A stretch of 64,000 nt of DNA from Eutreptiella sp. 'Long Island Sound 2002' (GCA_964036045.1 OZ038378.1:164424001-164488000); one strand, 5' to 3'. Shown: positions 3,106 through 45,810, counted from the stretch's first letter. Numbers and translations are program-made. Notes: a model not told the origin generated them from the sequence alone.

Positions 3106-41333
<38,228 letters not shown>

Positions 41334-44021: not shown

Positions 44022-45810
44022 GTGACAAGTGACAGCCCACACGTCGTTGTACTGGGCGCAGGAATATCTGGTCATTCGTTGGCCACTGACGCGCATCTGT
44101 CTTACCACCAAAGGATAATTTTAGAGAGGGACAAATTTGATGTGGACAAATTTGGAAGCCCTACCTCGTACCAAATATTTCCTTCAATTTTAAGGATGCG
44201 ATGTGTCAAAATGTGTGCACTACACATGGGCTGCAGGAGGGGTGGGTTTTTTGCGCGCTGCGGAGTGCTGTCGGAAATGCATTGTACGACGCGTCGGGGC
44301 GTCGTACAAGGCGTCGGGGCCCGACGCGTCGGGGATGTACGACGCGTCGTACAGTGTCGTACAAGGCGTCGGGGCCCGACGCGTCGGGGATGTACGACGC
44401 GTCGTACAGTGTCGTACAAGGTGTCGTACAGCACCAACACCGTACGACACAGTACGACATAGTACGACCGCCCTCCCCCTCTAGGCGGGTAAACGATGGC
44501 AGCGGACCGTCTTGGGGGAAGGGGGCCTTCGGCCCCCTTCCCAAATATTGGCACTTCGCGTCTACAACATGGCGACAGTGTCTACAATTAGCAGGCCGCG
44601 TCTACCTGTGGTGCACAGTGTCTACAGACCCCAGACCGCCCTCCCCCTGTGCAGAGTGTTGCTTAATAGAAGGGGGGGGGCAGAGTGTTGCTTAAGAGAG
44701 GGGGGGGGGGGGGGGGGGGGGCAGAGTGTTGCTTAAGAGAGGGGGGGGGGCAGAGTGTTGCTTAAGACACTGTACGACGCGTCGTACAGTGTCGTACAAG
44801 GCGTCGGGGCCCGACGCGTCGGGGATGTACGACGTGTCGTACAGTGTCGTACAAGGCGTCGGGGCCCGACGCGTCGGGGATGTACGACGTGTCGTACAGT
44901 GTCGTACAAGGCGTCGGGGCCCGACGCGTCGGGGATGTACGACGCGTCGTACAGTGTCGTACAAGGCGTCGGGGCCCGACGCGTCGGGGATGTACGACGC
45001 GTCGTACAGTGTCGTACAAGGTGTCGGGGCCCGACGCGTCGGGGATGTACGACGCGTCGTACAGTGTCGTACAAGGTGTCGGGGCCCGACGCGTCGTAAA
45101 ATCCCTATTTCGACAGTAGTGGGAGCAGATCAAATTTTGCGTAGGAGAAGGATGTGCTACTGGTACACATGCCTTGGGTCTCGAACACCCGCCCTGCGGT
45201 GTATCATGGCTGTGGAGATTTGCCACTGCTCACGGCAACGCTGCAGAATGCGATCCACCAGTTCTGTTGACGTCACTGTCAACCATTGTAAATGCAGCGA
45301 GACCGGCATGGCTGGTCCTGTGGTGCACAGTGTTGTCCAAGCGTGGGATCCGCGTCTCACCGGTGTTTTCCCTGACTTTGATCATGCACGTACAAAATGT
45401 GGGTGGGGAGGGGGTGGGGGACCCTTTCTGCACAACGTCCCCAGACCCTTGTCCGTGGTACACTTGCGAGATGCGCGCAGACCGCGGCATGGCCAGCCAC
45501 GGGAGGTGCGGTTCCTGCAAATTGCTGCCCTTGTGCCGCGCTGTGGCTGTGGGACCCCCAAAGCCTTCTGACTTCCTTCTTGTGGTTGACCACATGCAGC
45601 GGTGACCGTCCCGGTGGTGTGAGAGGAAGAGGAGCATGTTTGAAGGCTTGTGTCTGTTGAACTCACCCCATCACGTCCTCTCAGTATGGGCTGCATTCCC
45701 GTCTCCCTCAATCCAATCATGAGTCTCTGCATTTCGCAATCCCGTATCGGAGGCTACTCCGTTCTTCACATCACATGGACCAAGGCATCCAAGGTGGCAG
45801 GTTGGACGCG
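44022..45810 (+). pseudogene. Possible decayed FAD-dependent (class A flavin) monooxygenase, interrupted by the 44284-45100 element
   Basis: VVVLGAGISG...ILER (44040-44130), VVGAD (45116-45130) and DQGIQGGRLDA (45778-45810) appear in the canonical order of the GxGxxG, GADG and GQG-x-N-x-G-x-x-DA motifs, but in broken frames. Confidence 0.4.
44284..45100. mobile_element. 0.8 kb non-autonomous inverted-repeat element with TGTACGAC termini, 55 bp palindrome arrays and a copy of the KDZ element's 167 bp module
   Basis: The left end TGTACGACGCGTCGGG is inverted against the right end CCCGACGCGTCGTAAA. The 55 bp units start at 44771, 44826, 44881, 44936, 44991 and 45046, with 2-3 more at 44284-44430. 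Segment 44485-44635 matches the 167 bp unit at 13692-14190. Confidence 0.75.

Follow-up and report, generated by a model that had tools for sequence, protein, structure and literature searches.

A 674-bp non-coding transposon family with dense TACGAC arrays in a euglenid genome, probably driven by a distant KDZ transposase

In the 64,000-nucleotide stretch of DNA analysed here (the window), the word TGTACGAC occurs 28 times against 0.88 expected from shuffled sequences, and 27 of these occurrences fall within positions 44283-45073. What is this cluster and, if it is mobile, what moves it? The sequence-only reading had placed a non-autonomous sister of a KDZ element at 44284-45100, with termini and a repeated recognition word that each differed by one base from those of a KDZ element elsewhere in the window. 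KDZ transposons are known mainly through their transposase genes, from fungi, animals and green algae, and to our knowledge their ends, binding sites and non-autonomous derivatives are poorly described.

The interval 44284-45100 served as the query in a search of the 2.28-Gb genome (2317 contigs). Forty near-full-length matches were scored from at least 1186 first-look candidates, while an exact 28-mer from the left end was found 148 times and a 30-mer pattern from the right end 150 times, with no occurrence of the reversed control in either case. These matches represent a family of about 150 copies with identical ends, scattered over at least 26 contigs. Among 30 fetched copies, conservation extends beyond the queried interval, by 20 bp at its left end and by 21-25 bp at its right end: GAGTGCTGTCGGAAATGCAT is conserved ahead of the first TGTACGAC and TAAAATCCCTATTTCGACAGTAGTG follows the last CGACGCGTCG. 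Perfect 8-bp target duplications, with sequences that differ between copies, lie at these outer positions in 28 of the 30, so the true ends are further out than had been thought. The window copy accordingly spans 44263-45121, with ends GAGTGCTGTCGG...CGACAGTAGTG, and is laid out as GAGTGCTGTCGGAAATGCAT directly followed by TGTACGAC on the left and closing with CGTCGTAAAATCCCTATTTCGACAGTAGTG on the right. The left end GAGTGCTGTCGG and the reverse complement of the right end, CACTACTGTCG, form a short imperfect inverted repeat. TGTACGAC is the first subterminal word on the left and is degenerate at the right end (GTCGTAAA); the proposed one-base difference from the KDZ element of the window therefore holds for the repeated word but not for the termini. 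The parts of the window copy, and the repeat that borders it, are:

44103-44261, strand not assigned: end of an unrelated repeat family, outside the element and adjoining its left terminus
44263-44282, plus strand: true left terminus, GAGTGCTGTCGGAAATGCAT, conserved in 30 copies with the 8-bp duplications directly outside
44283-44431, plus strand: left subterminal array, one degenerate unit and 55-bp units (Tandem Repeats Finder and word positions)
44442-44468, plus strand: three direct GTACGAC words at 10-bp spacing (read from the sequence)
44469-44650, plus strand: one copy of a 168-bp module, with 98.9% identity to its counterpart in the autonomous TACGAC element described below
44651-44767, plus strand: filler, GCAGAGTGTTGCTTAAGAGA and then a G-run, four times (Tandem Repeats Finder); absent from the autonomous element on contig C1
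44771-45096, plus strand: right subterminal array of 55-bp units, in the same orientation as the left array (Tandem Repeats Finder)
45097-45121, plus strand: true right terminus, ...TAAAATCCCTATTTCGACAGTAGTG, outside the interval given earlier

Tandem Repeats Finder resolved the 55-bp unit TGTACGACGCGTCGTACAGTGTCGTACAAGGCGTCGGGGCCCGACGCGTCGGGGA into 2.7 copies at 44283-44426 (93% matches) and 5.9 copies at 44771-45096 (98% matches). The unit holds an 18-bp palindrome without mismatches, TGTACGACGCGTCGTACA, as well as GTCGTACA words spaced by 10 bp, just as had been described from the sequence; in each unit of the left array the palindrome is followed, 10 bp further on, by a third GTCGTACA word. 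The units point the same way at the two ends, an arrangement not usually seen with inverted-repeat recognition, and this counts against the explanation proposed below. The three GTACGAC words at 44442-44468 are what remains of the 10-bp array that runs to 11 units in the autonomous element, where ACACAGTACG stands 11.4 times in the same place. Within the module, four phased GTCTAC(A/C) words are spaced 20 bp apart and accompanied by a perfect GC-rich hairpin with a TTCG loop. A non-autonomous status fits the coding content of the short element, in which only stop-poor frames through the repeats were found on both strands, with no Pfam match; a comparison with Rfam gave nothing above chance.

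The family consensus is 674 bp long and non-coding, and is composed of the arrays, the module and the filler. Divergence of the copies from it is 0-1%, and many are identical to it. The 28 duplications have G or C at position 1 in 26 cases and at position 8 in 22. Two copies with different right-end subfamilies (L015 and L028) carry the identical duplication CATGGATG, and both lie inside satellite-like sequence that repeats about every 12 bp. The window copy has diverged from the consensus by 1.9%, and its right array has 5.9 units compared with about 2.5 in the consensus from the 30-copy alignment. Its flanks match at only one of eight bases, leaving it without a target duplication. On the right it is bordered by unique sequence and on the left by the repeat at 44103-44261, for which there were at least 1350 first-look candidate loci, 40 of them scored at 92-100% identity; these matches stop at 44258-44261, 2-5 bp short of the element start. 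The window copy is thus an old, rearranged member of the family, as seen from its missing duplication, its divergence, its grown right array and the repeat at its left edge.

The TACGAC family also comes in other sizes. GTACGAC pairs 10 bp apart number 6273 genome-wide, and a search with them recovered relatives of 1.5-2.4 kb made of long inverted 10-bp arrays and four modules, with no space for a gene; a search with the ends recovered elements of 192 bp with exact left and right ends, which are still smaller derivatives:

C1:6098001-6100396 and C1:11423009-11424500: mid-size elements
G000:C3:184694807-184694998 and G000:C4:15016932-15017123: 192-bp elements

Pairing of left- and right-end matches also yielded three long 'copies' of 5955, 8817 and 4282 bp. 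The 5955-bp one (L061, G000:C1:166391810-166397764) was considered as an autonomous parent and rejected, as it is instead a short element swollen by a minisatellite with about 160 units of 33 bp, CCCCTTGCATCCCGGCAGGAGCACTGCCCCCGG, which separates the left array from the 10-bp words. At G000:C15:13638574-13780530 and G000:C3:17003366-17003785, right-end 30-mers occur with no left end to match them, several as pairs 390 bp apart; a local tandem repeat may have arisen there from the right arm.

The larger element of the window, with which the sequence-only reading had compared the short one, was delimited by its similarity to the short-element termini and by a 7-bp direct repeat, GAGGCCC, at 13211-13217 and 23052-23058:

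13218-23051, plus strand: TAAGAC-family element, 9.8 kb, with ends GAGAGCTGT...ACAGTTATG
13686-14157: 2.8 tandem copies of the 168-bp module (alignment)
15078-18032, minus strand: transposase ORF, N-terminally truncated, 984 aa; the full-length version is P0002, 1082 aa

In the arms of this element, TGTAAGAC occurs 17 times against 1.03 expected, always within 13227-13352 and 22934-23042. It is related to the TACGAC family, with a word one base apart, so the description of the two as sisters stands. Their outermost bases are near-identical (GAGAGCTGT...ACAGTTATG in the TAAGAC family and GAGTGCTGT...ACAGTAGTG in the TACGAC family, with the terminal 9 bases nearly the same), and both families share a duplication of 7-8 bp and the order of end, arrays, modules, minus-strand ORF, arrays and end. 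The module is also common to both, as had been claimed: the copy at 44469-44650 is 84-88% identical to those at 13686-14157. The words differ, being GTAAGACG and CTAAGACG in the TAAGAC family versus GTACGACG in the TACGAC family, as do the array periods (11 and 24 bp versus 10 and 55 bp), and the short-period arrays are direct in the former and inverted in the latter. GTACGAC is absent from the TAAGAC element of the window, and neither GTAAGAC nor CTAAGAC occurs in the 10 kb of locus L062, where the TACGAC copy on C1 has its left arm, modules and ORF.

A 28-mer from the core of the module occurs 850 times in the genome. On C1, all but about a dozen of its 73 matches fall inside identified members of the two families, and the module is therefore not a free repeat. 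A segment upstream of the transposase gene (window 19290-19781, about 450-490 bp) is 82% identical between the families. It was rejected as a family-specific feature, with many other loci matching at 81-87% (at least 1688 candidates), and is probably an independent repeat, either free or captured as a module.

Assigning the transposases to the KDZ class required remote comparisons. Pfam returned no match for the 984-aa ORF or for P0002, even at E = 10, and the TACGAC-family transposase P0004 scored 13.5 bits against Pfam KDZ (PF18758), below the cut-off of 26.6. A six-frame scan of the genome with PF18758 gave no match, but its controls were silent too. A word-based protein search with P0002 returned two near-identical proteins only, and in a protein atlas the nearest clusters carry CxC5/CxC6 and KDZ domains at a score of 0.86, which is a lead only. 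An exhaustive phmmer search with P0002 gave 49 hits, including the paralogue P0004 at 34% identity, and six of the weak hits carry Pfam KDZ above the cut-off. When the Euglena protein profile was aligned by hhalign to a profile of these six KDZ proteins, the probability was 99.7% (E 3.7e-26, 154 columns), with the motifs YD.aC, DRFH..H..C and NS..EQ in register. Because phmmer reaches KDZ-positive proteins and the profile alignment is this strong, we accept P0002 and P0004 as distant KDZ transposases, an assignment by remote homology in which the direct Pfam cut-off is unpassed. Conserved Cys pairs are visible in both proteins, and neither matches a Pfam CxC family. The two are 32-34% identical overall and about 44% identical in the core, and the figure of about 33% includes the N-terminal Cys-rich region.

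A third KDZ-like locus (L071, G000:C1:146872200-146882199) is 28-34% identical to P0002. Its surroundings contain 16-bp CCGCCTTGTGTGTGCA units within repeats of 83-182 bp and a 12-bp satellite of 72 units, and no TA?GAC words or arrays were found there. In addition, dozens of KDZ core matches spaced about 2.34 kb apart occur at G000:C19:14.00-14.51 Mb, 15.48-15.52 Mb, 6.66 Mb and 7.03 Mb. Each has 35-37% identity and three stops, and the array resembles a satellite that has formed around an inactivated KDZ fragment.

An autonomous partner for the short element, which the sequence-only reading had called for, was found in three copies. A six-frame genome search with the window ORF as query revealed open 1070-aa frames at C1, C5 and C24 with 33-37% identity, corresponding to P0004 (1069 aa), and a search with the P0004 catalytic core (131 matches scored of 199 candidates) returned exactly three copies, all open and 99-100% identical. 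The elements around them are 6.7, 7.5 and 8.9 kb long, each with an intact 1069-aa transposase gene, so there are three KDZ ORFs flanked by TACGAC arrays. The two findings that would have overturned the sequence-only reading, a module common outside both families and a lack of KDZ ORFs beside TACGAC arrays, were thus not borne out. The C1 copy is placed as follows:

C1:16690611-16697269, ORF on the minus strand: autonomous element, 6659 bp (fetched loci L062 and L063)

Its ORF is stop-free and 99.5% identical to P0004. From the left, the element consists of the left end TAGTGCTGTCGGAAATGCATTGTACGAC..., 55-bp units, eleven GTACGAC words at 10-bp spacing, a 136-bp spacer, three tandem 168-bp modules and the P0004 ORF on the minus strand, followed by 1.3 kb of upstream DNA, an (AT)n run, twenty-eight oppositely oriented GTCGTAC words, again 10 bp apart, two 55-bp units and the right end ...CGACAGTAGTG. 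In the C24 copy, which measures 8918 bp, there are about 12 modules and a perfect 8-bp duplication, GTCATTGT. The 7459-bp C5 copy is flanked on either side by GCTGGGA, a repeat of 7 bp that becomes 8 when the first G is assigned to the target. At C1, the right arm and 2.49 kb of adjoining DNA have a second copy, 99.8% identical, on the opposite side of the element (L062 1390-4114; L062 and L063 joined, 10537-13261), which could be a tandem duplication or the product of an aberrant transposition; the target duplication is unreadable because the locus lies in this repeat.

The arms connect the short element to these copies. Over positions 2-206 (about 205 bp), its consensus matches the left arm of the C1 element at 99.5% identity, and its last 164 bp match the right arm at 98.2%, while the G-rich filler at 44651-44767 is the only part absent from the C1 parent. 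As judged from these alignments, the short element is a deletion derivative of the 6.7-8.9 kb P0004 parent that retains 206 bp from the left of the parent, 164 bp from its right and one of the 168-bp modules, with about 125 bp of filler.

Collectively, we read the window sequence at 44263-45121 as a MITE-like internal-deletion copy of a 674-bp transposon from a young KDZ family that is driven by P0004 through its TACGAC words, with a probability of a little under 90%. In the mechanism that we propose, P0004 supplied in trans would bind the dense subterminal GTACGACG words, whose placement in palindromes and 10-bp-spaced arrays would present them on one face of the helix. The transposase would then pair both ends and cut at GAGTGCTG.../...CAGTAGTG, and insertion is accompanied by the observed 8-bp target duplications. 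That the hexamer is the recognition word of the transposase is suggested by analogy with the maize systems Ac/Ds and En/Spm. By the same reasoning, the one-base difference in the word probably separates two lineages between which mobilisation has ceased. It is a more tentative idea, to which we give somewhat less than even odds, that the sister KDZ lineages, retaining their end bases, duplication length and the 168-bp module, switched their subterminal word by one base (GTAAGACG to GTACGACG) as their transposases diverged deeply (to about 33% identity), and were thereby insulated against cross-mobilisation.

The short element might instead be moved by the transposase of the TAAGAC family (P0002 type), with the terminal bases being what matters and the hexamer arrays being irrelevant. 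The near-identity of GAGTGCTGT/ACAGTAGTG to GAGAGCTGT/ACAGTTATG is what such a model would predict, the duplications belong to the same length class, the module is common to both families, and P0002-type coding copies are far more numerous (at least 20 ORF-bearing copies versus three for P0004). It is nevertheless the arms of the P0004 elements that the short element shares at 98-99.5% identity, its own arms lack the TAAGAC word, and the two transposases have diverged to about 33% identity even with their N-terminal Cys-rich regions counted, which leaves this model unlikely. The notion of a local satellite or a chance cluster of palindromes, rather than a mobile element, could draw on the tandem-array build, on a window copy without a duplication and on the right-arm pieces in 390-bp-spaced pairs on C15 and C3. 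Since identical ends and different perfect 8-bp duplications characterise about 150 copies spread across at least 26 contigs, we consider it ruled out, its probability being vanishingly small.

A further proposal concerns methylation. The A-to-C change had been thought to create CpG in one family only, which could make that family alone methylation-sensitive. In a fuller form of this model, the CpG-rich TACGAC arrays would act as an epigenetic switch in which (hemi)methylation gates transposase binding and distinguishes this family from the TAAGAC family. The extended word, GTA[A/C]GACG, does contain two CpGs in the TACGAC family, the CpG observed/expected ratio of its arms is 1.8 (0.72 for the whole window and 0.54-0.61 for the ORFs), and there is a precedent in maize Ac, whose transposase binds subterminal hexamers in a manner that varies with their methylation state. 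Against this, CpG is present in both families and the TAAGAC arms are also rich in it (1.5); as both words end in GACG, the contrast between the families is a matter of degree and not a clean one. The 30 copies contain 15 CpG transitions and 11 at other G/C sites, about 2.3 times the per-site rate, which is too few events to carry weight. Nor did the suggested association with TET/JBP genes bear out: none of these genes is located within the elements or close to them, the autonomous element, with only one long ORF, lacks the space to house a dioxygenase gene, and the three Tet_JBP matches in the genome (C2138, C21:6.70 Mb and C5:60.03 Mb) are far from every KDZ copy found. Since base J concerns thymine, the A-to-C change has no obvious bearing on it. 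The epigenetic reading is weaker than originally proposed and we regard it as doubtful.

The short element itself is a real and fairly ordinary 'parasite of a parasite', and the general picture of transposons is unchanged by it. Its value lies in the completeness of a young system, with three intact autonomous copies, about 150 short copies as well as mid-size derivatives, and a sister family one base apart. The locus and its partners provide a substrate for testing how KDZ transposases recognise their ends, and an aid to annotating a 2.3-Gb repeat-rich genome. If the specificity switch is true, it would be a first handle on how KDZ transposases read DNA, and the module, which carries four phased TGTAGAC-like words and a hairpin, would serve both lineages as a cis-acting site, recognised by a host factor or a shared domain. 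As to the host, a 24-nt query that we take to be the Euglena spliced-leader sequence matched 5458 times (control 0), dispersed and on both strands; this agrees with a euglenid, and the count is far above expectation for SL-RNA genes alone. No report of KDZ elements in Euglena was found in the literature searched.

Among known systems, the Zisupton/KDZ elements are the closest in their catalytic core, which is homologous (hhalign 99.7%; D..C, DRFH..H..C and NS..EQ), in the candidate Cys-rich regions N-terminal of that core and in having terminal inverted repeats. The 8-bp duplications found here (28 of 30 short copies and the C24 copy) are also those of Zisupton and one Dileera lineage (PMC12730594). 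The present elements differ in that both transposases are very divergent, falling under the Pfam KDZ cut-off, in their euglenid host, and in subterminal arms made of long, ordered arrays of one word together with a tandem 168-bp module. In contrast to the fungal-type KDZ elements that carry TET/JBP, a passenger gene of this kind is absent.

The organisation of the short element has its counterparts in other superfamilies. Like the non-autonomous members of maize Ac/Ds and En/Spm-dSpm, it is an internal-deletion derivative that keeps both arms, with many short subterminal words in both orientations and CpG within the word, and it shares 8-bp duplications with hAT elements such as Ac/Ds. These are likenesses in how the element probably works. 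The superfamily here is KDZ and not hAT or CACTA, and the putative binding words stand at an exact 10-bp phase and inside perfect palindromes. It also recalls the mPing/Ping MITE system in being short (674 bp), non-coding and present in about 150 near-identical copies, a deletion derivative that outnumbers its low-copy autonomous partner (three copies). The element is longer than classical MITEs, however, internal tandem arrays with unit numbers that differ from copy to copy make up most of it, and it coexists with mid-size (1.5-2.4 kb) and 192-bp relatives.
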